A stretch of 64,000 bases of DNA from contig OZ218957.1 in NCBI GenBank assembly GCA_965112735.1, positions 1,054,001 through 1,118,000 on the forward strand. Reading direction: 5' to 3'. Each line of letters starts with the position of its first letter. The stretch's first letter is position 1. The stretch is from Phaeosaccion multiseriatum. Taxonomy: Eukaryota; Protista; Ochrophyta, other classes. Of this stretch, positions 6,121-21,165 are shown one piece after another. The notes below the pieces were generated by a model. That model saw only the letters and a program-made list of their open reading frames with translations. It was not told the DNA's origin and searched no databases. Made by a program: the position numbers and the translations under genes.

Positions 6121-9100
6121 ATGATGGCGTCTGCTCTCAAGCAAGACAAGGACGTGAAGGGCGTAGTGGTTGAAGGACCAGAGAAAGGAGTGGAGGAGCC
6201 GAAGGAACAGGAGGCGGCGAAGGAGACATATCACCAGGCCGCTGGAACGAATGACATCATCATGGTCAGGAGCAGCGACGGCTCGCTGCATTCATCCAAG
6301 TTCTACGTGAGTAAAGTGCTTTTGTGTATTTTCCACCTCATAGAAAAGCAGAGGGTCAGACTCTTCTTCTCCCTTCGTGACCTCGTGATGCTGATAAGTG
6401 CTTCATCCTTTGCATTCTTTTTCTCTGTTCTGTTTGCCAGTGCACTTTTTATAAAAAGGTCAAGCCTGATGCCCCTCGACCCGAGGGTAGGCCCAAGTAC
6501 CTGGAAACTGTTGGGAGGCCTGTTCTCATTACGTTAAATGGGTAAGGAGAGCACGGATGGATGGCCGCTGCTGTGAGCACAGGGTTCGCAAATTATTTCA
6601 CGCCGTTGCTTTCCTCCAATCGTTGTCGGACTTGCACTGCTGCTGACCTTTGCCATTCACCCCTTTTACGTACGCAGCGTTAAGCAGGAAAACATCTTCA
6701 TGCAGGTGAGCTTCTGCTGAGTGTGTGTGTGCACGCGTGCAGCCATGGGGGGGGGGGGGAGAGACGTCTGCTACCCAACAGGACTGGGAGGGCGAGGCTA
6801 ACTCTGCATACGCGTTCCGGTACCTCTCATCAGGTCGGTGCCGACGGCTTCTGCACCTTTGCGGACGGAGGAAAGTTCCCCCCGCAGGTCAGTGCACCCT
6901 GCCCTGCTATGGCGGACAGGGGGTGTATGGGAGAGGGGAGATTCCGTGTGGCGAAGAACAAGACATTTGGGGCCGAGTGCATGCACCCGCATTGCATTAT
7001 GGGGCTCATAGAAAAGAGAGCAAGGGCATTGGGAGGCCCTTGGAAAAGAAGAGACCATTATTCCAAGAGCGAGTGCCTTCAAGCTTGCTTACTCGCCCCT
7101 CCCCCCCCCCTGCCCTCCCCTCCTCTTCTTCTCACACACCCGCCTCCTTGTCCCTCGCTGCTCTGTCCCTCTCATGCAGGATGTGATCCAGGGGTGGAAG
7201 CTGCTCCCCGGGCTGAATTCAGTGCGCTTCGAACTGGCCTACCGAGGCGACCCCCGCGTGCTCGTGGCTGACGCCTACCTCTTCCTCTATGACGCCTCAG
7301 CCTCCTTCATCGTGGTCGACATCGACGGCACCATTACCCGGAGTGACGTGCCTGGACTCATTATGACATTCAGGTAGATGTGAGACGGGAGCGCCTCAGG
7401 GCAAACGAACGGAATGTTGATGTGCTTGCTTTCTCTCTCCGCCCCTCCCACCTCTCTCCAGCCCTGGCACTATTGACCATACACACCCTGGCGTGTGCCG
7501 CTGTCTGGAGGAAGTAGCGATGGACGGAGCCAACCTGCTTTACCTCACCTCCAGACCCATCATGCTCGCCCCCAAGACAAGGGCCTTCCTCAATGAGTGC
7601 AGGTGAGGAGGCCGAAGGGGGGCAGATACGAGCGCTGCCCACTCAGCCTCTGCCTGGAGTATGTACGGGGGGTAGCGGGGGACTCTTGCCTTGTCTCTTA
7701 CAAGTAGGCTTTGTGTTGATTGTACCGCAGGCAAGACCGCGCCCTGCTTCCTCTGGGGCCTCTGGTGACCAACAAGGCCAATCTTGGGGGGGTGCTGCTC
7801 AGAGAACTCATCACCAAGGATATGCATCAATTCAAGACGTCCTCCTTGCTCGAGGTGAGCGGAGAGGAGTGTCGGGGGGCGGAGGGGCAGTCTTGGGGCA
7901 GCCTAGGGGCATTCTTCTCTGCGTACATTCGCAGGGCTTTTGAGGGAGAAAGAGTGGAGACATGAGCCAACAGCCAATCAGGCTCGCCCTCCCCTCCCCT
8001 CCCCACCCCTCCTCTCCCGTGCCGTATGTGGCTTCTCTCTTTCGACCGCTACTCTCTTCGACGGAGCAGATAACCGACATCTTTCTAAGAGCGGGGAGAA
8101 AGGTGCCTTCCCGAGTGTCGGCACTGCCCCCAAAGACGCAAGAGGAGGTCGGGCGGACACTGCAAGCCCTCGAGGCCGAGCGACCCGAGGAGGAGAAGCT
8201 TGCAGTCAGTCCTGGTGTCTTAGTTCGCGGTGGGGCAGGGGGTAGCGGCGCATCGGCTCCATCTAGCTCTCAGCAAGGCCAAGCGGGAGATGTGCCAGGC
8301 AGTAAGGGGGGGGGGGGCGAGGAGGGACGCGCCGTCGACGAGGATGACGAGGACGACGCGCGGCCGGTATTTGCAGCAGGCGTGGGAAATCGGGAGCACG
8401 ATGGCTTGGCGTATCGAGCGGGGGGGGTGCCCATGGAGTTCGTGTTCCTCATAGACCCTTCCTCCGTCATTGTCAATTGGTCGCCTTCGCTCAAGGCTAG
8501 GAAACGCTTCAAAGACGACGTAAGTGCAGACAAGAGCATTGGAGCGGTGGACATACAATTGCTTAGTCGGGGTCCGTCCGACTGGACGTGATGAGTACGA
8601 CACAAGTGTGTTTGGCTGTGGGGCGCAAAGGCGTACTCTGAGCCTGACGAGCACAGCTAAGCCGTATGTTTGGTGCTGTACTGCTCCCCCCTTCGTCTGT
8701 CCGCTCTGTCCACTCTGTCCGCCTGTCATGGGGCACTTCCTCTTTTCCTTGTCTGTTGTGTCTGGTGTGTCCAGGTGCACATTGCAGAATATGTAAGGCT
8801 GGAGCAAAAGGCCTTGGAGAAGCAGCGGCTAGCCTCATTGGCGACGGAGAAAGCCAGACAAGCTGCTTCGCAGGAGGACGGGGAGGGGGAGGGGAGCACC
8901 GCTTTAGAAACTTCATCAATGCAATCAGAACCCTCCTCCACACCAGCGACCGATCCTTCTGACGTGCAAGTAGAGATTGGGAGCGGGGACGATGTGACAT
9001 TGAAGGAGGAGGGGGGGGGCAAAAAGGCGGATGGAGAAATCGGACAGGGTGGAGAGAAGGAGGGGCTGGCCAAGGGCGGCTTGGAGTCCCTGAGCGACAG

Positions 9101-9815: not shown

Positions 9816-10356
9816 TTGGCTCGGTGGTTGGAGCCTCACGGCCTCTGCGTCACTTCTGCATGGAGAGAGCTAAGCTGCACCACCTGAGGCTGCTGGGGGC
9901 TGGGAAGGGGCACTTTCTCGTCTGCGGTCTTGAGACTCGTACGGGTATACCGCATTCATCAACGGTCAACGGCGGGCCCCGACTTGCTGGGGTCGCTCCT
10001 ACGCTGGAGGATCGGAGAAGGGGCGCGAGATGATCATGGAGGAAAGTAGGAGGTAGGGCTTCACGCCGATATGGCATATGGCGCGACGGTGGAACGCATG
10101 AGGTCAGAACGCCGTCGCCAACTGGAGGGCTGAGGAGACGCGTCTCAACGTCGCTCAACGCAGGCAACCGAGCGGGGGGTTGGAGAAAAGAAAAATATGT
10201 CAATGGCGGGCACCCCGCCTCCCCTAAAATTCTCTTATCCCTCTCATTTTTCCCGGTTATAATAACGCTGTAGGTGGAGCTTCTTCTTACCCGGACCTCT
10301 TTAGTACCCTTTTATCTTACCTCGGGGCGGAGGCTGGTCCCTCCCTCTACGTAGGC

Positions 10357-13300
10357 ATGCCACCGAACTTGCCTGAGGATCCAATCACCCTGGCTCAGAG
10401 GGCGATAGCGGTTGGCATACAGCAGAGTGAGTCGCACCGTGGCTGGATTGCTTCGAGCTCTGGCTACAGAATCTCACTCTTTTCTCCCTGTGTCCCCCTC
10501 TCCTTCTCTTTCTCTTTCTCGCACACACACTCTGAGCTCCTCGGGCTGAAGAATTCTCACTCCCCTCTCCTCTCCTCTCTCCCTCCTCCCTCTCCTCCTG
10601 TCCCTAACTGTACCTTCCTTCCGCTCATTATCTCCGCTCTCTCCTCCTCTCTCTAACTGTCCCTCCTCCTACTCTGACGCTTTCATACTCAGATGGCAAG
10701 GAGGTTGAGGACATCTCGAATTACCTTCACTCCCTCCGCAATGACACTTCGTCAGCGAGCAGCACCAACACGGGCGCGGGGCAGCCTTTCCCGCCTCCGC
10801 CTCCACAGCAGGTCACCAAAGAGGTGGAGGCGGGGAGAAAACTCTTACTGCAGTACGCCATGAACGCCATTCAGGTAGGTAAAGCTGCGCCAGAGCACCA
10901 CGTGTCCACGTGTCCACCCTCCCACACTGTTTGCCCTCCCCATGCACATGCACGTCTACGCCCTCTCGCACCACCCTCCGTTCACTCTATCGACTTTGTC
11001 CACTCTATCCTGCCCTTGACAGGTGGCGGAAAATCAGCCCAAGAAGTCTCTACGCGCACAGGGCTTTCACACCGCAGTCATCTACTTTGATGTGCTTAAG
11101 GTAAGGGGTCTTTGAGGTAGGAGAGCCCTATATATATATATACGCCAACAACGTAGTGACAGATAGACCGATACACAGACAACACACCTCCACTCCGACC
11201 TGCTGATTGTCATTGCTGGTGCACTTACTGTCCCTCGTTCGTGGCCCTTGCCTGCCCTCTCTCTGTCCCAGTCCTTCCAAGCGCTCCCGGAGGAAATGGA
11301 GGAGCGTCTGGAGTACGCCCGCTGGCGCCTGCAGCAGTGCTCGCACCTCGTGGAGAACATGGTGCCCGAGAACATCAACGCCACGCACTGCATAGAGGAC
11401 ACTTTCATCGTGCACAAGGTGGCCGGGTGGGAGGCAGAGCGTCTGTCCATCTCGTATCTTTTCCTATCAACGGATATTACAAGGAGGAAATTATACATGC
11501 TCTGATCGTGAAGGGGAGAGGAGCAGGCGCTCACTGCTTACTTTTGGCTGTGGCTCTGTCTGTCCCTGTGTGTGTCTCTCTCTCTCTTGCCCCTCCCCTC
11601 CCTCTTCCTCCTCTTCCTCCTCCTACATCATTCCCTCCATTCCGCAGGATAAGATTCTGGGGAAGGGAACGTACGGCACAGTGACTGTGGCTACCCACCG
11701 CGGCACCAACCGCCGCTACGCCTGCAAGGTCATCAAGGTAAGCTGAGCAGCGCCCTCACGGCATTGGATGGCAATCAATGGGGACTGCCCGTGTTGCTCG
11801 CAACTGGCGGGGGCATCCTTGCATCAGTGCTACAGCTGGCTCACTGACGCTCCTTACGTGCTCTGTTTGGCACCTTCTATGCCTCGCATGCGGTTCTTCC
11901 TCCTTTGTCCCTTTTCCCTCGCACTCGACGTGTGCACATGCACAGATGTCTCGATTGGACCCTCGGCAGGTCTCCAAGCTCTACACGGAGATTCAGTGCA
12001 TTCGCGCCCTCGACCATCCACACATCGTCAGGTCCAGGTGCGTAGCGTGTGTGTATGTATGTGTTTGTGTTTGTGTGTGTGTGTGTGTGTGTGGTGGGAG
12101 AGGAAGCGAGGAGATGAGGGGCCGAGGAAGCAAACGAACGTGTGTGTGTTTATGTGTTTGTGTGTGTGTGTTGTGTGGTGGACGAGGAAGCGAGGAGATG
12201 AGGGGCTGAGGAAGCAAACGAGCGCCCACTACTGGACCTACGGCTCTCTTTCGCTCCTTCGCACTCTTGCGTTTGTGTTCACATCTGTCCCATCTGTCCT
12301 ATCCTATCTGTCTACCGACCCATCTCTCTTTCTGTTGGCAGAGGCGTGTACTTCAGTAAACGCTATGTGTATCTGTTAATGGACCTGATGGAGGGCGGGG
12401 AGCTGTTCGACCTGGTCACGAGCAAGCCCAACCACTGCGCCACCGAGGCGCAGATCATCAACATGGCCACGTCCATGCTCAGTGCTGTGGCGTACATGCA
12501 CGCCAGGGGCATCGTGCACAGAGGTGGGTGGGGGTAGGTCACAGGGGTAGGTCACGAGGGTAGGTCAGGAGTGTAGGGGTAGGTCATACAGGTTGGTCGT
12601 ACGGGTAGGTCACGAGGGGAGTGGTAGGTCAGGAGGGTAGGAGTAGGTCACAGGGGTAGCTTATAGGGGTACGTCATGCGGGTAGGTCACGAGGGGAGTG
12701 GTAGGTCAGGAGGGTTGGAGTAGGTCACAGGGGTAGCTTATAGGGGTACGTCATACGGGTAGGTCACGAGGGAAGTGGTAGGTCAGGAGGGTAGGAGTAG
12801 GTCACAGGGGTAGCTTATAGGGGTACGTCATGCGGGTAGGTCACGAGGGGAGTGGTAGGTCAGGAGGGTAGGAGTAGGTCACAGGGGTAGCTTATAGGGG
12901 TACGTCATGCGGGTAGGTCACGAGGGGAGTGGTAGGTCAGGAGGGTTGGAGTAGGTCACAGGGGTAGCTTATAGGGGTACGTCATGCGGGTAGGTCACGA
13001 GGGGAGTGGTAGGTCAGGAGGGTAGGAGTAGGTCACAGGGGTAGCTTATAGGGGTACGTCATGCGGGTAGGTCAGCAGATCACTCCTTCGGTCCTTCTTT
13101 ACCGCTGCCAAGCCCCGCCCCTTCCCTCAAGCCATGCTGTTTTCTCACTCTGAACTAACTGCGTGGGTCCCCCCCTCCCCTCCCCTCCCCTCCCTTACCT
13201 TCTGCTCTACTCTGCTCTACCCTGCGCCGCTCATTCGTTCGTCTCTCCGTCTGCGCAGATTTGAAGCTCGAGAACTGGCTGCTTGAGTCGCCAGGGGACA

Positions 13301-16300
13301 CAACGAGTCTCAAGCTCATTGACTTCGGCCTCAGGTGAGGTGGGATGGGGTGGGGTGGGGTGGGGTGGGGTGGGGTGGGGTGGGGTGGGTAGGCAGCGGT
13401 TGTGACGTCCGGCAGCAACGAGACTTCTCTTCTTCCTCTCCGTTCACGCGTCTCTAGCCTTGCCCTATCCCCTCGGTGTACCATGGCTTCACTGCACGAC
13501 TGCCACACGCGCCCAGCACCTCCGTTGCCCTGTCCTCCCCCCCCCCCCTTCCTTCCCCTGACCCCTGCCCCTTACCCTTTGCTCCTTGTCCTTTGGCCTG
13601 ACCCTCACTGACCGTCACCAGCAAGCACTTCGGCCCAGCGGAGGTCATGCATCAGGTGCTGTGCACGCTTTGTACACACTTAGTCAGGCGGCGGGAGGGG
13701 AAGTGCTGCTCCCCCCCTTCCTCCTCCTCCGAATCGAGTGTGGGCACATCGAAGGAGAGGGGGGGGGTGGGGGGAGCGGGCGTGGCGTAGGCCAGGTGTA
13801 CGAAGGACTCTCTCCCACTAACCACCTGCCGAAAGTCTCACCCCACGTCTCTCCCCTTTTATCTCTCTCTTGTGTGTTGTGTGTGTGCCTCTTCTCGACA
13901 CCACAGTCCGTGGGAAGTACCTACTACGTAGCCCCAGGTGCGGAGCTTGTGACGGAGGCGAAAGGGAGGGAGAGAAGGAGGGAGCGAGGGGCGGAGGGAA
14001 GGAGGGACGGAGGGACGGGGTGGAGGGTGTCTTCAGTCTTGCTCTCCCCACCTCATTTATCAGTTACGCCTGAGGAGGCTGAGGTGGTGTTCTTCGTCCC
14101 ACCCAGACACACTAAAACTCAAAACTCCTTCCCAGGCACACGTAAACTAAAACAACCCCTTCCGTTCCTCCCCCATCGCTCTTCGACTTGTGCAGAGGTG
14201 CTGCAGGGGGAATACAATGAGAAGTGCGACGGTGAGTGAGTTAGTGCGTCAGTCAGTGGGTCAGTGAGTGAGTGAGTGAATGCGGAAGTGAGTGAGTGAG
14301 TGAAGTTTATAGTCCGAAGCGCTTCGACTAAACCATTGCCCCGATTGAAACTTGAAACTGTCCTAGTTGGTTGGTTGGTTGTTTGGGGATCATCTCTGTA
14401 GAAGCGATACTGAGTGTGGGACTCACCCCCCCCCGCGCATCACTCTGACGCCCATCCCCCCCCCCCCAATCGGATCAGTGTGGAGCCTCGGTGTGATCGT
14501 CTACATGGTGATATCGGGGGCGCCTCCGTTCTGGGGTAAGAACGACACAGACGTGCGAGGCCGCATCCTGCTCGGGGGCTTTGAGATGCCGGAGCAGCTC
14601 TTCTCCTGCGTATCGCCTGATGCGAAGGTAGGAGGGGAAGGAGGGGGTAGGGGAGAGGGGAGGCACTCACTGTGTTGGAGGACGAAAGATACCGCGGACT
14701 TTCGGTCTTGTTCCGCTCACGCTCCGCTCCGCTCCTTCTCTACTCCTCCCCCCCCCCCCCCCCTGTTTGTGTACAGGACTTCGTCGGTCTCTTGCTGCAG
14801 AAGGACGTGAGCAAGCGCCCCACCGCCGAGGAGGCCCTTCGGCACCCCTGGCTGCAGTCCACCGCCGCCGCTCAGGTGCGGCATGTGGGAAAGTAGAGGC
14901 ACATGGGCGGGCAATGGGCAATGGCATCTTTTGTACTTTGTACCCACAGCGAGCATGTGTGCCTTTCTACTTGTCTCCTTACTGGGGCGTGTACCCACCC
15001 GCTGGCCCTCCCCTTCCGCCCTCACCCCCTCCTATCCACTGCGATCCCCCCCCCCCCCTCGCCCTCTCACCTTAGGCCAACCGCGGCATCCACGGCCCTC
15101 TCATGCGACGCACAGACCTCGCGGAGGCCCTGCGGCAGTTCGGCAAATTCAGGTGCTGTGCTGTGCATGGATGCCAGGGAGGTGGAGAGAGAGGAGGAGG
15201 GGGAGGGGATGGGCTTGCAGGGCTTAGATCTCACCCACTCACCCACTCACCTGCTCACCACTGCCTCCCTCTGTGCCTGTCTGTCTCTCGACCCCCTCGT
15301 GTGGTGCTGGTGCTGTTGTACTCTTGCCCTCGCAGCGAGCTTAAGAAGCTCACTCTGGAGGTGGTGGCTTACAACATGGCGCCCCAGCAGCTGGTGAGTG
15401 AGCAAGGGGGGCCAAGTAAAGACGAAGCACACACGAAGCAGAGACGTGGGGAAGTAGGGAGCGTCATGTTTGTCTCCGTCTTGTTGTTGCACTAACACAG
15501 AGAGCTCGCCCCAGGAGGGCTCACTCATTTGTCATTTGTCACTGTGTGCCACCACCATGGCTCTTGTCTCTCTCTCTCTCTCTCTCTCTGACTTCGTTTG
15601 TTCCCTTCCCTTGCCTCCCCTTGCCATGCCTTCTCTCGCCTTGCCTTCCCTTGCCTTCCCTTGCCGTGAGCGCAGTCCTCCCTACGAGAAACGTTCGAGG
15701 CCATCGACACAACCCGCACAGGCTCAATCAGCCTCGCTGAAATGGCCCGAGCCCTGCGAGGCTACATGGGAGAGAAAGAGCTCCAGCAGCTCTTCGGCAA
15801 GCTAGACGTTACACACAGCCAGGTGAGGGGGGAGAGGGGAAGGGAAGGAGGGAGAGGGAGAGGGCGAAGGGAGAGGAGATGGAGTGAGGGTGGAGAGAAG
15901 GACCGCAAAGGAAGCTGTCGACCGACCCCCTTCATCCCCCCCCCCCCCCCCTCCTCAGGAGATCAACTACAACGAGTTCATCGCCTCCACCATCTGGACC
16001 CGGCTGCAGCTCGACGAGGAGAATCTGCACGAAGCATTCGTCTCGCTGGACCAAGAGGTGCGTGCATGTGTGTGTATGGATGCATATATATATATATGTA
16101 TGTATGTATGTCGCAGATGGGGGGGGGGCAAAAACATACGCACACGCACACACAACGGAAAGAAGAATCCCCCCTCCTCTTAACCAAAGCCTTCCTTCGT
16201 TCACCCCCCTCCCCCTTCCCCAACCCTCTGTCGCTCTTTTCTCTCTCCCCGCCTCTCTCTCTCTGTCCTTAGGGGAGGGGCTTTCTGACGGTGGAGAGCA

Positions 16301-16846
16301 TACGTAAGGTGGTGGGCACGGATTGGGGAGCAGCGGAGGTGGAGGCGATGATCAAGGAGGTGGACACCAACCAAGACGGGAAAGGTGCGTGAGATTCATC
16401 CAAGGCACAGACCGCATACACCCACATGCATACATACGCTCATGTCCACATCACACCTGATACACCCCACATACATAGATAGCACTCACGCCCACATCCA
16501 TCGAGATCCATTCACATCTATGCTTTCTTCTCAATCAGAGGTACTCATAGAGAGATGCTCAATCACATCAAAGGTAATGGTTGTTGATTGGACTGACTTT
16601 GAAACCTCCTCATGCTCCGTCTTCACAGTGGACTATAACGAGTTCTCGAGCGGCCTCAAGGCCATGGCCCTGACTCGGCACGCAAGGCCTCTGTCCCTGC
16701 CGGGCACGGGGCTGCTAAAGAAAGTGAGGAGAACCTTCGGCAGCTCACGAGGCTCAAGTGGAGGGGGGGATGCCGCTGCAGGGGCGGGGACAGGAGCGCC
16801 CGACCGGCCAGAAGGAGGGGCACATGAGGCCCCACCAGACACATGA
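10357..16846 (+). CDS. Calcium-dependent protein kinase (kinase + junction + 4 EF-hands) with N-terminal Vta1/LIP5-like domain, 19 exons
   Basis: Spliced motifs LGKGTYGTV, YACKVI, HRDLKLEN, IDFGLS, GSTYYVAPE, CDVWSLGV, EALRHPW and junction SELKKLTLEVVA. EF loops DTTRTGSISLAE, DVTHSQEINYNE, DQEGRGFLTVES, DTNQDGKVDYNE. Exons 1-4 join in frame to the kinase. Confidence 0.92.
12091..12222. repeat. Intronic ~84-bp tandem duplication with GT microsatellite
   Basis: aggaagcgaggagatgagggg..gaggaagcaaacga at 12101 and 12185, separated by (GT)n. Confidence 0.8.
12534..13075. repeat. 77-bp minisatellite (6 near-identical units plus degenerate leading copies) inside a CDPK intron
   Basis: Units start at 12603, 12680, 12757, 12834, 12911, 12988 (partial at 13065). 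Each unit contains several gtaggtca sub-repeats. Confidence 0.95.
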
Positions 16847-17051: not shown

Positions 17052-19373
17052 CTAGGCGGAAGTCTTTTGCCTCTTGGGGAGCTTGTCAGGATATATGCCC
17101 TCCTTTGTAAGGTTCTCCTTCATCCGCTGCATGACGCCCACACACGCCGTCTTGATGTCCTTGATGGGCACGTCGGGCAGCGCGTTGACCATCTTGCTGC
17201 AGTCCAGCTCGTTGTTGGAGCGCTTGGCCACAATCACCTTGTCCTGCTCCTCCAAGGTGAAGTTGGAGTAGCTGTTGGAGGGGAGAGAAAGGGAAGGAGG
17301 AAGGTGGACAGACACAGGTCAGCATGTGTAGTTTGCTGCAGCTTGCTTTCATGGTGTGAGTCGTCTACTGCCATGGACCGGTCGCGAGAGGGGCCACATA
17401 TTGATTGCAACCCCCTGCGCCAGTGAGAGCCGTGGATGATGCCGCACACGTGATGGGGGGTGGAGGAGGGGCAGAGTGGGGGCTGGAGAGGGCAGGGCCC
17501 TTACGCAAAAGACTTACGTGAAGGACGGGTCGATGTGCTCCTTGTAGAGGTCGAGGATCTCGTTGTGGCTGATGGCCCCGGGGTTGCAGAAGTTGTAAAT
17601 GCCTGAGAGGTTCCGCTCCGCCATGATGATGGAGATGGGGAGGAGGTCGTGCAACACCGTCATCGAGTTGGGGATGTTCACCACCTGCGGGGGGGGGGGA
17701 GTGGTGAGAGAGAGTGAGTGTGGGCGTGTGTGTGAGTGAGTGTGTGTGTGTGTGAGTGCGTGAGAGAGAGAGAGAGTGTGTGTGTGTGTGCAAAGGGTCA
17801 CGGAGACCTGTCGAGGGGTATACATGAGGGCCACGAACCGAGTCAGTCTGTGGAGGCTCTCCTCCTCCTCCTCCTCCTCCTCCTCCTCCTCCTCCTCCTC
17901 CTCCTCCTCCTCCTCCTCCTCCTCCTCCTCCTTATCCTCCTCCTCCTCCTCCTCCTCGATGGCCGATGGGCCGCCGTCGCTATACGTTTCGTTTGCTTCA
18001 CACACACTTGAACTGAGCTTTTGCTCACCTTCTCGTATTTGGTAATCTTTGTGATGAAGTTGCGCGCTGTCAAGTCGTCCGAAATGGGCATGCGCACCCT
18101 CAACACACACACCTGTGCGGTGCATTTGTCAGCAGAGGCCCGGCAAGAAGGGGAGGGGAGGATGATGAGTCTCACGACAGAGAAGTCACCGCCGTCGCCA
18201 ATGTATCGTAACCTCCTCTCCTTGCACACCACACTGAACACTAACCTTGTCGTAGGCCCTGAGCATCTCCTCTACGAAGCCCTTGGTGAGGGAGTAGTAC
18301 GAGCCGTCGAAGTTGGCCCTGTCCTCCTCTGTGAATCCCTTGCCGCCGATGACGTGGTCCTTGTCGTATTCGAAGATGCAGCCAGTAGCGAAGATGGTGC
18401 AGTGGATGCCCTTCATATCGCAGAGGTCCTGAAGGGTTCATAACGCACATAACGCAATAAGGAGCCACACACACACATTGGACGGCGAGGTGAGTGGCAG
18501 TAGGCTGGGTGGGGGCAGACGTCGGACAAGGAGCACCCATGCCAGAAGTGGGCAGGGGCGTACAAAGCACTGCCACCCACTGTCTTTTCGCACCGCTCAA
18601 GGACGCCCTCCCTTCCACTCACTCACTCCCTCACTCACCGCGAGGTTGAGAGTGCCGATGACATTTGCTCTGTTCGTCTCCTTCTTGTGGCTCTCGCACC
18701 AATCCACATTGGGCCTGCCCGTCACTCCTGCCGCGTTTAGCACGTGAGTGGGCTTGAACTCCTCCAGCTCCCTGCGAGATCAACACAATAAAGGGGAAGA
18801 GCAAGAAGAGTCCGTCAGCCGGCACTGCTTTCTATCCTTGCATCGCACTTATTCCGTCTCTACCCTTGCGCTGCAGGGACCGAACCCTCCCAGTTATACC
18901 CTGTCTAGCCCCGTCTGTCCCGCCGCACCATCCATCGCCCGCCTCCCCCACGTACTTCATCACTGATTCCCTATTCTCGAGGCGAGCGTTGCCCAGGTGC
19001 ACAGTCTTTCCTGCGTCCCGGAGCAGCCCAGTCAAGATGCCCCCCAGCCACCCGGTCTTGCCGTAGATCAGGAATACCTGCCAAAGGAAATCACGGAAGG
19101 AGGGGGGGAAGGTTAGAGACCTTCAGGATCCGGTCAGCTTGTCTGGATATGGGACAGCCTGCAGAGGCGACAAGGTGCATCAAGACTCTTTCATGGTAGG
19201 GTAGTTGCGGCGAGCTATTTTGCTCCTGCTTTCCCCTTTTCTGTCAAGGATCTCTCAAAGGCCTACGGAAGCTCTGGCTCTTCGCTTGCCCAGGACAGCA
19301 GCAGCGCTTGCCCACTCGCACTCACGTTGTCGCTTGACGCAGCTCCATTCTCGGCACTCCCGTTGGTAGCCAT
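17052..19373 (-). CDS. Bifunctional NDP-4-keto-6-deoxyglucose 3,5-epimerase/4-reductase (NRS/ER, UER1-like; rhamnose synthesis), 7 exons
   Basis: FLIYGKTGWLGG, PTHVLNAAGVTGRPNVDWCESHK, FATGCIFEYD, GSYYSLTK (YxxxK), LRVRMPIS, VVNIPNSMT, KRSNNELD. Confidence 0.95.
17860..17957. repeat. (TCC)n trinucleotide microsatellite in an NRS/ER intron
   Basis: About 32 TCC units between exons ending ITKYEK and starting VVNIPNS. Confidence 0.9.
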
Positions 19374-19508: not shown

Positions 19509-21165
19509 ATGGCGAGGAGATACGATAGCAGCACGACCACCTTCTCTCCAGAGGGGAGACTTCACCAGGTGGAGTATGCCATCGAGGCCATTTCAAACGC
19601 CGGCACGTGCGTGGGCATCCAGGCCAAGGACGGGATTGTGCTCGGAGCAGAGCGAAAGACGGTAGGTCAACAGGGGGGCGGGACCTGGCCTGCTGACAAC
19701 GTGTACACCTACTAAGGGACATGTGTCAACGTGAATAGGGTGGATAGGAGGCGACCGGGAGGATGCGATGCATGTGGGGCGCTTTGCCAGGAGGAACCAG
19801 TGCGCGATTACCAGAGAACATTGTGGGGAAAGGGTGGTTGTGCCACGGTCCGGACTCGCCAGCAGGAGGGTGGTGTGGCCTGCTGTGATCGTATAGTGAA
19901 CGTCTGGTTAGATCTTCTCGTTGGTGCTTGCTGCTGAGGGGGGTACTTAGCTTTGTGTGTGCCTCCACTCTCCCTCGCGCCTCCCCTTCCCGCCCTTGTA
20001 CTGCAGGTGTCGAAGCTGCTGGCTCCCTCCAAAGTGTCGGACAAAATGTACAAGATCGACGCGCAAACGTCTTGTGTAGTAGCGGGGTTGACAGCAGACG
20101 CAAACATCCTCATCAATCAAGCCCGTCTCAACGCACAACGCTACCAGTACACATACCAAGAGGGCATGCCAGTGGAGCAACTCGTCAAGCGGGTACGGGT
20201 CATCTCTCCACTGGTCCGCACCAGAGAGGATCATCGCTAATATGCCCTCTTTCCTCTGCATGTACAGGTTTGTAATTATAAGCAGGCGTACACACAGTTT
20301 GGAGGGCTGCGACCGTTCGGAGTTTCCTTCCTCTTTGCAGGCTGGGACCAATACGAAGGGTTCCAACTATATCAGGTAGGTTGACCGGACATGCGCAAGA
20401 GCACACACACACACACAGTCTCTCTCTACCTCTCTTTCTCTCAAACGGCTGTGCTACGCTGCTTGAAACGCAACGACTGAATGACCGTCCGCAGTCGGAT
20501 CCCAGTGGAAACTACGGCGGCTGGCGGGCGACTGTGATCGGCAACAACAAGGAGGCTGCGAAGGGACTCATCAAGACGGACTACAACGAGGACCTCACCA
20601 TCAAGGAGTGCGTGTTGCTCGCGGTCAAGGCAAGTGCGCTTCTAGGGTCTGACAGTCTTGCGGTGTTGGGGGGGGCGACCGAGTGAGGCTGACTGACAGT
20701 GAGAGAGCGTCTGACTGACGTGACGCCGCCCTGTCCCCCTGATACGTACGTACACAGGTGCTCAGCAAGACGATGGACAGCACCACCCCCACGGCAGATA
20801 AGATGGAGTTCACGCAGCTCACGCTGGAGGATGGAGTCGTCGTCACGAAGGTGAGTGAGTCAAGTCAGTTTTAGATGCTAAGCTGTGGTACGCTGAAACC
20901 GTCAAAAGAATGGGGTTAGGACTACGCTATCTTGTGTTGTGCGTATGGTGAGGCGTCAGTGTCCGCATGTTGCGGTGCACCTTTACAAGTCAGCAGCCCC
21001 GCCGCCTTGTGCCTGTCGTTTTCGTGACCCTGATGGGTGATGATTTAATCACTCTTCCGTCCGCCCCCCTTTCCTGTTGCACTTGCGCAGGTGTTACCGG
21101 AGGCAGAGGTGACGGCATTGCTAGAGCAAGCGGTCAGCGAGATGGCCACAGAAGGAGACTCTTGA
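19509..21165 (+). CDS. PSMA4: 20S proteasome subunit alpha-3 (PSMA4/PRE9), 6 exons
   Basis: [66 protein letters not shown]|VLSKTMD. Intron 20630-20757 is GC-AG. Confidence 0.96.

Follow-up and report, generated by a model that had tools for sequence, protein, structure and literature searches.

We analysed a stretch of 64,000 nucleotides from Phaeosaccion multiseriatum (assembly GCA_965112735.1, contig OZ218957.1, positions 1,054,001 to 1,118,000 of the forward strand; the whole stretch is called the window here) and found at 10357-16846 on the plus strand a gene whose predicted product joins a Vta1/LIP5-type MIT domain to a calcium-dependent protein kinase (CDPK). By the Pfam matches of its orthologues, by profile searches against the PDB and by predicted fold, the segment of residues 64-144 is homologous to the second MIT domain (MIT2) of Vta1/LIP5. 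As judged from a tree of the kinase-to-EF region, the gene descends from one old fusion and is a member of an ochrophyte-wide CDPK clade.

Homology of the N-terminal bundle

A first-pass annotation, made from the sequence alone, had named this segment as MIT2 of LIP5/VTA1 by comparison with a LIP5 sequence. That sequence agrees with the PDB chains, and the identity itself is borne out by Pfam matches in orthologues, by the ranking of PDB profile searches and by the fold predicted for an orthologue. The Vta1 family of Pfam (PF04652) matches the N-termini of all six brown-alga proteins in one register (E 1.5e-6 to 2.1e-4, profile positions ~68-140 of 145), the best score being 28.7 bits against a gathering cut-off of 26.8, with one protein above the cut-off. 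In the wider family 23 of the 54 members match at E<=0.01 (best 1.6e-10), and besides Vta1 no Pfam family recurs among the 54 except Pex24p, which belongs to an insert described below. Searched one by one, the four N-terminal exons of the window gene have no Vta1 match; the pieces are too short, and this is not counted against homology.

When the brown-alga sequences and the window protein were combined into a profile, three human LIP5/VTA1 N-terminal-domain sequences came out on top of 177,635 PDB sequences (E 2.3e-4, LIP5 residues 92-155). LIP5 was likewise the top PDB sequence for a profile of the 54 members that held no window rows (E 2.5e-6), here over LIP5 residues 11-151, that is, both MIT domains. 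The spliced N-terminus of the window protein scores 102.6 bits against that 54-member profile over residues 43-154. A language-model comparison places three Vta1 clusters, and nothing else, next to the bundle; this is used as a lead only.

The AlphaFold2 model of the first 175 residues of an orthologue (P0157) predicts two short N-terminal helices (5-14 and 21-37; predicted local distance difference test, pLDDT, ~70-77), a disordered linker and a three-helix bundle (helices 99-115, 123-143 and 148-174; pLDDT 93-97), in line with MIT domains, which are asymmetric bundles of three helices and ~75-80 residues. With this model MIT domains make up nearly all of the top 22 Foldseek rows, at E ~0.1 as expected for such a small fold, and the LIP5 rows have the highest identity, with a root mean square deviation (rmsd) of 2.2-2.5 Å over ~73 columns. 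VIA-align gives Z scores of 8-10 to the MIT domains of LIP5, Vps4, CdvC and calpain-7; LIP5 is first (Z 9.8-9.9, 77-81 residues, 24-25% identity), tied with the Vps4 MIT at Z 9.6. The MIT regions of Atg1 and ULK1 reach Z ~8 and that of ULK3 is weaker (Z 7.4). Because Z scores of helical bundles call for caution, the fold is taken as confirming MIT, and the assignment to Vta1 is taken from the sequence profiles.

Gene model and transcript evidence

Spliced by eye and by script, 19 exons with GT-AG borders at all introns give an open coding sequence of 1977 nucleotides and a product of 658 residues. Residues 65-133 of this product repeat, letter for letter, the peptide that the first-pass annotation had read in frame through exons 2-4. 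The features of the gene are as follows.

10357..16846, plus strand: whole coding region, from the open frame, GT-AG introns, orthologue collinearity and RNA contigs; stop codon 16844-16846
10357-10426, 10693-10874, 11023-11100, 11272-11418, 11648-11737, plus strand: exons 1-5
11946-12037, 12342-12523, 13259-13334, 13622-13655, 13907-13937, plus strand: exons 6-10
14196-14231, 14479-14627, 14777-14875, 15076-15152, 15336-15393, plus strand: exons 11-15
15676-15822, 15959-16057, 16273-16384, 16629-16846, plus strand: exons 16-19
10375..10742, plus strand: N-terminal short helix pair, residues 7-40 (EDPITLAQRAIAVG... and ...ISNYLHSLRN), spliced over intron 1, from orthologue alignments
10743..10811, plus strand: Ser/Pro-rich low-complexity linker, residues 41-63, read from the sequence
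10812..11373, plus strand: Vta1/LIP5-type MIT, residues 64-144, equivalent to alpha5-alpha7 of Vta1 MIT2, spliced over introns 2 and 3
11404..14854, plus strand: Ser/Thr kinase domain, residues 155-415, from the end of exon 4 to exon 13 (Pfam Pkinase)
14855..15393, plus strand: CDPK-type junction, residues 416-467, collinear with relatives named calcium-dependent protein kinase in their sources
15676..16657, plus strand: calmodulin-like domain with four EF-hand loops, residues 468-596 (Pfam EF-hand)
15706-15741, plus strand: EF1, DTTRTG, near-canonical
15805-15976, plus strand: EF2, degenerate
16049-16299, plus strand: EF3, degenerate
16363-16642, plus strand: EF4, fits PROSITE PS00018
16658..16843, plus strand: C-terminal tail, residues 597-658, with a weak clade-specific basic motif, RPLSLPGTGLLKKVRRTF, at 16685-16738, and without a VSL domain

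According to the alignments the N-terminal helix pair is kept in brown algae and Chrysoparadoxa, and the equivalent of the linker is disordered in the orthologue model (pLDDT <50). The MIT bundle includes the motif YARW (11314-11325), so that its Trp, residue 128, is retained as the first-pass annotation had said; this Trp is presumably a key contact for CHMP5/Vps60. The clade-invariant SHLxEN extension also belongs to the bundle. A stop lies in frame at 10225, and there is no ATG from there to the start ATG at 10357. An additional coding exon entering through the AG at 10354 was considered and rejected because an RNA contig is collinear with the genome through 10345-10426 and because of the stop at 10225. 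Residue 2 is Pro and not Gly, hence the protein has no N-myristoylation site, in keeping with what had been noted earlier about acylation.

The RNA support consists of short contigs from a single metatranscriptome run (X1), while three other runs carry the gene as unspliced genomic DNA. One X1 contig joins 10426 to 10693 (exons 1-2) with 0 mismatches and is collinear also through 10345-10356. A second consists of 19 nucleotides of the end of exon 4 followed by exons 5 and 6; its differences from the window are all synonymous, one of them in the 19 nucleotides. As exon 4 is joined to exons 5-6 in this contig, N-terminal and kinase exons lie on one RNA. A third contig joins exons 15, 16 and 17. 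This last contig differs from the window at 11 positions, and its EF1 (15706-15741) reads DTSRSG, a canonical EF-hand loop with Ser at both odd positions, as opposed to DTTRTG in the window; the RNA comes from a close strain, an allele or a paralogue.

It had been suggested that RNA linking exon 2 to the kinase exons would secure the model, and this is answered in part: exons 1-2 and 4-5-6 are joined, whereas no contig in run X1 covers the junctions of exons 2-3 and 3-4. These two junctions are backed by the reading frame and by gap-free collinearity with orthologues, some of which are transcript assemblies, and the remaining junctions outside the RNA contigs are collinear with orthologues as well. 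The gap in the RNA cover would fit a gene-model artefact in which a separate transcript holds exons 1-4 and no fusion is ever made. We consider this very improbable, since RNA contigs join the end of exon 4 (19 nucleotides) to exons 5-6 and exon 1 to exon 2, the same continuous architecture is found in more than 40 relatives, several of them on intron-free transcript contigs, and the upstream neighbour is a separate LNS2/lipin-like gene.

Kinase and calcium sensor

The catalytic motifs GKGTYG, HRDLKLEN, DFG and APE are intact. Pfam Pkinase matches single exons of the window gene and, in orthologues, reaches E 1e-73; the EF-hand families of Pfam also match both single exons and orthologues. There are four EF-hand-like loops at residues 478-591. 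In the window gene PROSITE PS00018 is satisfied by EF4 alone, and in the orthologues EF1 and EF4 are both canonical. From the intact kinase motifs and this EF1/EF4 pattern, the predicted protein is a CDPK in its architecture (kinase, junction, four EF loops) with probably one working Ca2+ site per lobe. The complete kinase with four EF-hands described earlier thus stands, with the qualification that only EF4 fits the PROSITE pattern. The junction is presumed, by analogy with other CDPKs, to be the autoinhibitory region. CDPKs are activated once Ca2+ loads their EF-hands.

Distribution and history of the fusion

Kinase exon 7 was searched against a representative library, and a local comparison of its matches with the spliced protein gave the first relatives, four proteins that share the N-terminal region with the window protein. 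Word-index searches from two of them led to orthologues of 654-670 residues in Scytosiphon, Pylaiella, Ascophyllum, Ectocarpus and Discosporangium, and also in Tribonema, to which the window protein is 45-54% identical over its length; for the brown-alga orthologues of this size the identity is 50-54% over ~620 columns. Among the best 120 CDPK relatives found with a full-length family profile, a local hidden Markov model (HMM) of the N-terminal region was positive in ~64, including Chrysoparadoxa, Aureococcus, Aureoumbra and a cluster with a Paraphysomonas transcript. A plasmid megablast with the N-terminal region had no match.

The tree was computed on the kinase-to-EF columns without the N-terminal ones, for 86 rows covering >=400 residues of the kinase-to-EF region (IQ-TREE quick search, LG+G4, midpoint root, support by the Shimodaira-Hasegawa-like approximate likelihood ratio test, SH-aLRT). 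A single group of 48 rows (SH-aLRT 99) holds all 45 that bear the domain, and its other three rows are short, apparently N-truncated models, two of which carry the tail motif described below. The window protein belongs to a 16-row subgroup (support 99) together with brown algae, Chrysoparadoxa and a Tribonema-like sequence. Sister to the MIT-bearing clade are long (900-1100 residues) diatom CDPK-like proteins (P0240, P0246, P0253, P0259 and relatives), and the MIT HMM has no match in their N-terminal extensions.

Many clade members keep both MIT domains, while the window gene and the brown algae have MIT2 only. A complete MIT1 (IPSSLRSVAPFLDEAQ... RRVSIFCIDHAFKLL...), which in Vta1 comprises alpha1-alpha3 and is the MIM1 site, is present in many members, and in one such full-type protein (P0177, residues 1-214) seven helices are predicted in Vta1 order with a mean pLDDT of 82.6. 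Its seven best Foldseek matches are LIP5 N-terminal domains (174-185 columns, E 9e-4 to 1.2e-2), with a large rmsd to LIP5 and an uncertain relative orientation of the two bundles. An HMM of MIT1 made from the full-type members finds this domain in pelagophyte-type members, its matches including P0107, P0088, P0171 and P0161, and has none in brown algae, in Chrysoparadoxa or in the window protein. Nor do the first 50 residues of these last proteins match anything in Pfam or, by profile, in the PDB. MAFFT sets EISNYLHSLRN beneath helix 1 of the full-type members, an alignment without statistical support. These residues may be a remnant of MIT1; as Pfam, the PDB profile and the MIT1 HMM are all empty, this is not demonstrable, and the MIT1 that had been described as degenerate is undetectable by these methods.

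No Pfam VSL family was found on the last exon of the window gene, which has no Pfam family at all, or on full-length orthologues. The C-terminus consists of the EF-hand domain and a short tail, and the absence of a Vps4-binding VSL tail claimed in the first-pass annotation agrees with this. Lacking the VSL domain, the gene is, on domain content, the recipient of a domain donated from Vta1 and not a Vta1 orthologue.

The pelagophyte-type members P0107, P0161, P0171 and P0200 carry an insert of ~300 residues between MIT1 and MIT2 with a sub-threshold Pfam match to Pex24p. In P0107 the insert is not an annotation error, since this protein is coded without introns on a 3.5-kb transcript contig (L001:139-3216).

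A further signature of the clade is a basic motif ~10-30 residues past EF4, W[KR]..[KR]P..RLQ..V[KR][KR], seen in the tails of P0154, P0180, P0178 and P0183. The tail HMM matches almost exclusively CDPKs with a Vta1-type N-terminus, the window copy being weak (12.8 bits), and in members with a retained MIT1 the tail contains another helix-like stretch, S.SL..F[KR]..R. The basic tail motif may pair with the MIT domain within the same molecule.

Proposed function and alternatives

In this gene the variable N-terminal region of a CDPK has been replaced by a derivative of the Vta1/LIP5 N-terminal domain, of which the second MIT bundle alone survives in this lineage. In the mechanism that we propose, the bundle would dock the kinase on a helix carrying a MIT-interacting motif (MIM) in an ESCRT-III-family protein, most likely a Vps60/CHMP5-like one. 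Binding of Ca2+ to the EF-hands (probably EF1 and EF4) would release the junction as in other CDPKs, and the kinase would then phosphorylate ESCRT-III, or proteins close to it, at sites of rising Ca2+ and ESCRT-III assembly; wound repair, multivesicular body (MVB) sorting and cytokinesis are candidate settings. Ligand binding could also tune kinase activity, because helix 3 of the bundle runs almost directly into the kinase N-lobe via SHLxEN..E. Both parts of the proposal have precedents, as MIT2 of Vta1 binds the MIM5 helices of Vps60/CHMP5 (PMC5141497) and ULK3 reaches and phosphorylates ESCRT-III via its MIT domains (PMC4475061, PMC9477494). The Vta1-specific alpha6/alpha7 motifs FHTAxVY and YAxW are retained over long divergence, which argues that a binding function has been maintained. 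We infer that targeting of a Ca2+-activated kinase to ESCRT-III of the Vps60/CHMP5 type is the most economical reading, and would put its chance of being correct at about even.

Several observations weigh against it. The link from the window protein to Vta1 is transitive through relatives, the N-terminus being divided by introns into exons that have no match singly, and a Z of ~10 for a three-helix bundle is not decisive alone. CHMP5 is reported also to contact the MIT1-MIT2 interface of LIP5 (PMC6862464), an interface that is absent here, and in ULK1 the partner of the MIT domains is ATG13, not ESCRT-III (PMC9477494). The YARW Trp is kept in the window gene and the brown algae and replaced in about half of the clade, and the window gene has one strictly canonical EF loop only. 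Within the N-terminal region, conservation is highest in the helix-3 extension SHLxEN..E (invariant L167, N170 and E174), which passes directly into the kinase, and such conservation beside the kinase suits an intramolecular role.

That last point, together with the variable Trp, is what speaks for a Vta1-derived bundle re-used as an intrinsic element of the kinase, which would set autoinhibition or activation by packing against the kinase or calmodulin-like domain, or by dimerising the protein, without an ESCRT-III partner. The loss of MIT1 in this lineage while the gene was kept would fit such a role, as would the clade-specific C-terminal motif, which co-occurs with the domain and could be its partner within the molecule. 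However, the Vta1-specific alpha6/alpha7 surface motifs have been kept over a very long divergence and many members keep the complete two-MIT domain, both more than a packing helix would need, so we regard a purely intrinsic role as rather unlikely. It is also conceivable that the bundle targets a non-ESCRT partner with a MIM-like helix and places the kinase in another pathway, for example autophagy initiation or the regulation of cargo or channels. MIT partners of this kind exist: ULK1/2 bind ATG13, NRBF2 binds the phosphatidylinositol 3-kinase (PtdIns3K) complex (PMC9477494, PMC12758336), and MIT1 of LIP5 also binds cargo such as AQP2 (PMC6862464); the Atg1 and ULK1 MIT regions were among the structural neighbours reported above. 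Since Vta1/LIP5 is the one MIT family picked out by the sequence profiles, and MIT2 is the dedicated Vps60/CHMP5 site in Vta1 (PMC5141497), we find this unlikely.

A more elaborate form of the ESCRT-III proposal, which we consider decidedly improbable, is a coincidence detector with an internal latch, where the basic helix past EF4 would serve as a MIM within the molecule and occupy the N-terminal MIT domain or domains, and firing of the kinase would require both displacement of the latch by an ESCRT-III tail and Ca2+ loading of the EF-hands. If this were true, ochrophyte algae would have a dedicated Ca2+-gated ESCRT-III kinase.

Neighbouring genes and repeats

Upstream, at 7174-8588 on the plus strand, two open reading frame (ORF) pieces match the Pfam family LNS2 (lipin/Ned1/Smp2); this separate gene ends well before 10357. 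Downstream on the same strand, 19509-19712 is the first exon of a proteasome alpha-subunit (Proteasome_A_N, E 5e-15). Between them, at 17052-18416 on the minus strand, lie tail-to-tail convergent ORF pieces (…NFTLEEQDKVIVAKRSNNELD…) that resemble part of a multi-exon gene. A by-eye look suggested a sugar-nucleotide epimerase/reductase; Pfam on the ORF pieces was empty, and the gene is left unnamed. A GAG/CTC microsatellite of the (E)n/(S)n type lies at ~17800-17950. Within the kinase gene, intron 7 contains a minisatellite (12602-13074; 77-bp unit, 6.1 copies, 97% identity) and intron 6 an 84-bp unit in two copies (12056-12221), and the genomic read contigs end at these repeats.

Relation to known systems and significance

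The N-terminal part resembles Vta1/LIP5, the cofactor of the Vps4 ATPase, in that residues 64-144 correspond to alpha5-alpha7 of MIT2 in sequence and fold, including FxTA..., YARW and the helix that follows, and in that many clade members have the full two-MIT N-terminal domain. In contrast to Vta1/LIP5, the window gene has no VSL domain (Vps4-binding and dimerising) and no detectable MIT1, and its domain is placed directly on a kinase. With ULK3 it shares a Ser/Thr kinase and MIT in one chain and, in our proposal, the logic of delivering a kinase to ESCRT-III (PMC4475061). ULK3, however, is a ULK-family kinase with C-terminal tandem MIT domains of non-Vta1 type and no Ca2+ sensor; the window gene falls outside the ULK3 type, its kinase grouping with CDPKs and its MIT being N-terminal, single and of Vta1 type. 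Because ULK3 is a precedent for MIT kinases, the fusion is not a new category.

Compared with the canonical CDPKs of plants, apicomplexans and algae, the order of kinase, junction and four EF-hands and the catalytic motifs are the same, whereas the variable and often acylated N-terminus is here a folded MIT without Gly2, EF2 and EF3 are degenerate and the tail is clade-specific. The PH- and cNMP-CDPKs of brown algae likewise have an N-terminal targeting or regulatory module added to a CDPK, although the module is another one (PMC12335766). ALG-2/ALIX and calpain-7, the latter with tandem MIT domains, are also Ca2+-linked ESCRT cofactors, by which Ca2+-binding or Ca2+-family proteins are tied to ESCRT-III (PMC9477494), but they are an adaptor and a protease, not kinases, and are unrelated in sequence.

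Full-text literature searches, whose scope leaves out most subscription journals, found no description of a Vta1/MIT-CDPK fusion, and a 2025 survey of CDPKs in the brown alga Saccharina reports PH and cNMP additions without mention of Vta1, MIT or ESCRT (PMC12335766). In public databases four relatives have precomputed Vta1, Pkinase and EF-hand Pfam matches, and the only name given there to the Ectocarpus protein is Ca2+/calmodulin-dependent kinase. The novelty claimed in the first-pass annotation is therefore to be narrowed: no paper describing the fusion was found, yet the ochrophyte-wide clade was already in the databases. The architecture is undescribed in the searchable literature, present without a name in public databases and not unique to this genome.

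In the membrane repair of animal cells, adaptor proteins mediate the recruitment of ESCRT-III by Ca2+ influx. To our knowledge, ULK3 is the one well-studied ESCRT-III kinase, and it is not regulated by Ca2+. If the ESCRT-III reading of the fusion is true, a kinase with its own Ca2+ sensor and a Vta1-type module would connect a Ca2+ signal with phosphorylation at ESCRT-III sites in a single protein, by a fusion that has been conserved since early ochrophyte evolution. The clade is a defined subfamily with two sequence signatures that is missing from current catalogues of algal CDPKs, and as it has an orthologue in Ectocarpus, in which genes can now be tagged and knocked out, the idea is directly testable.

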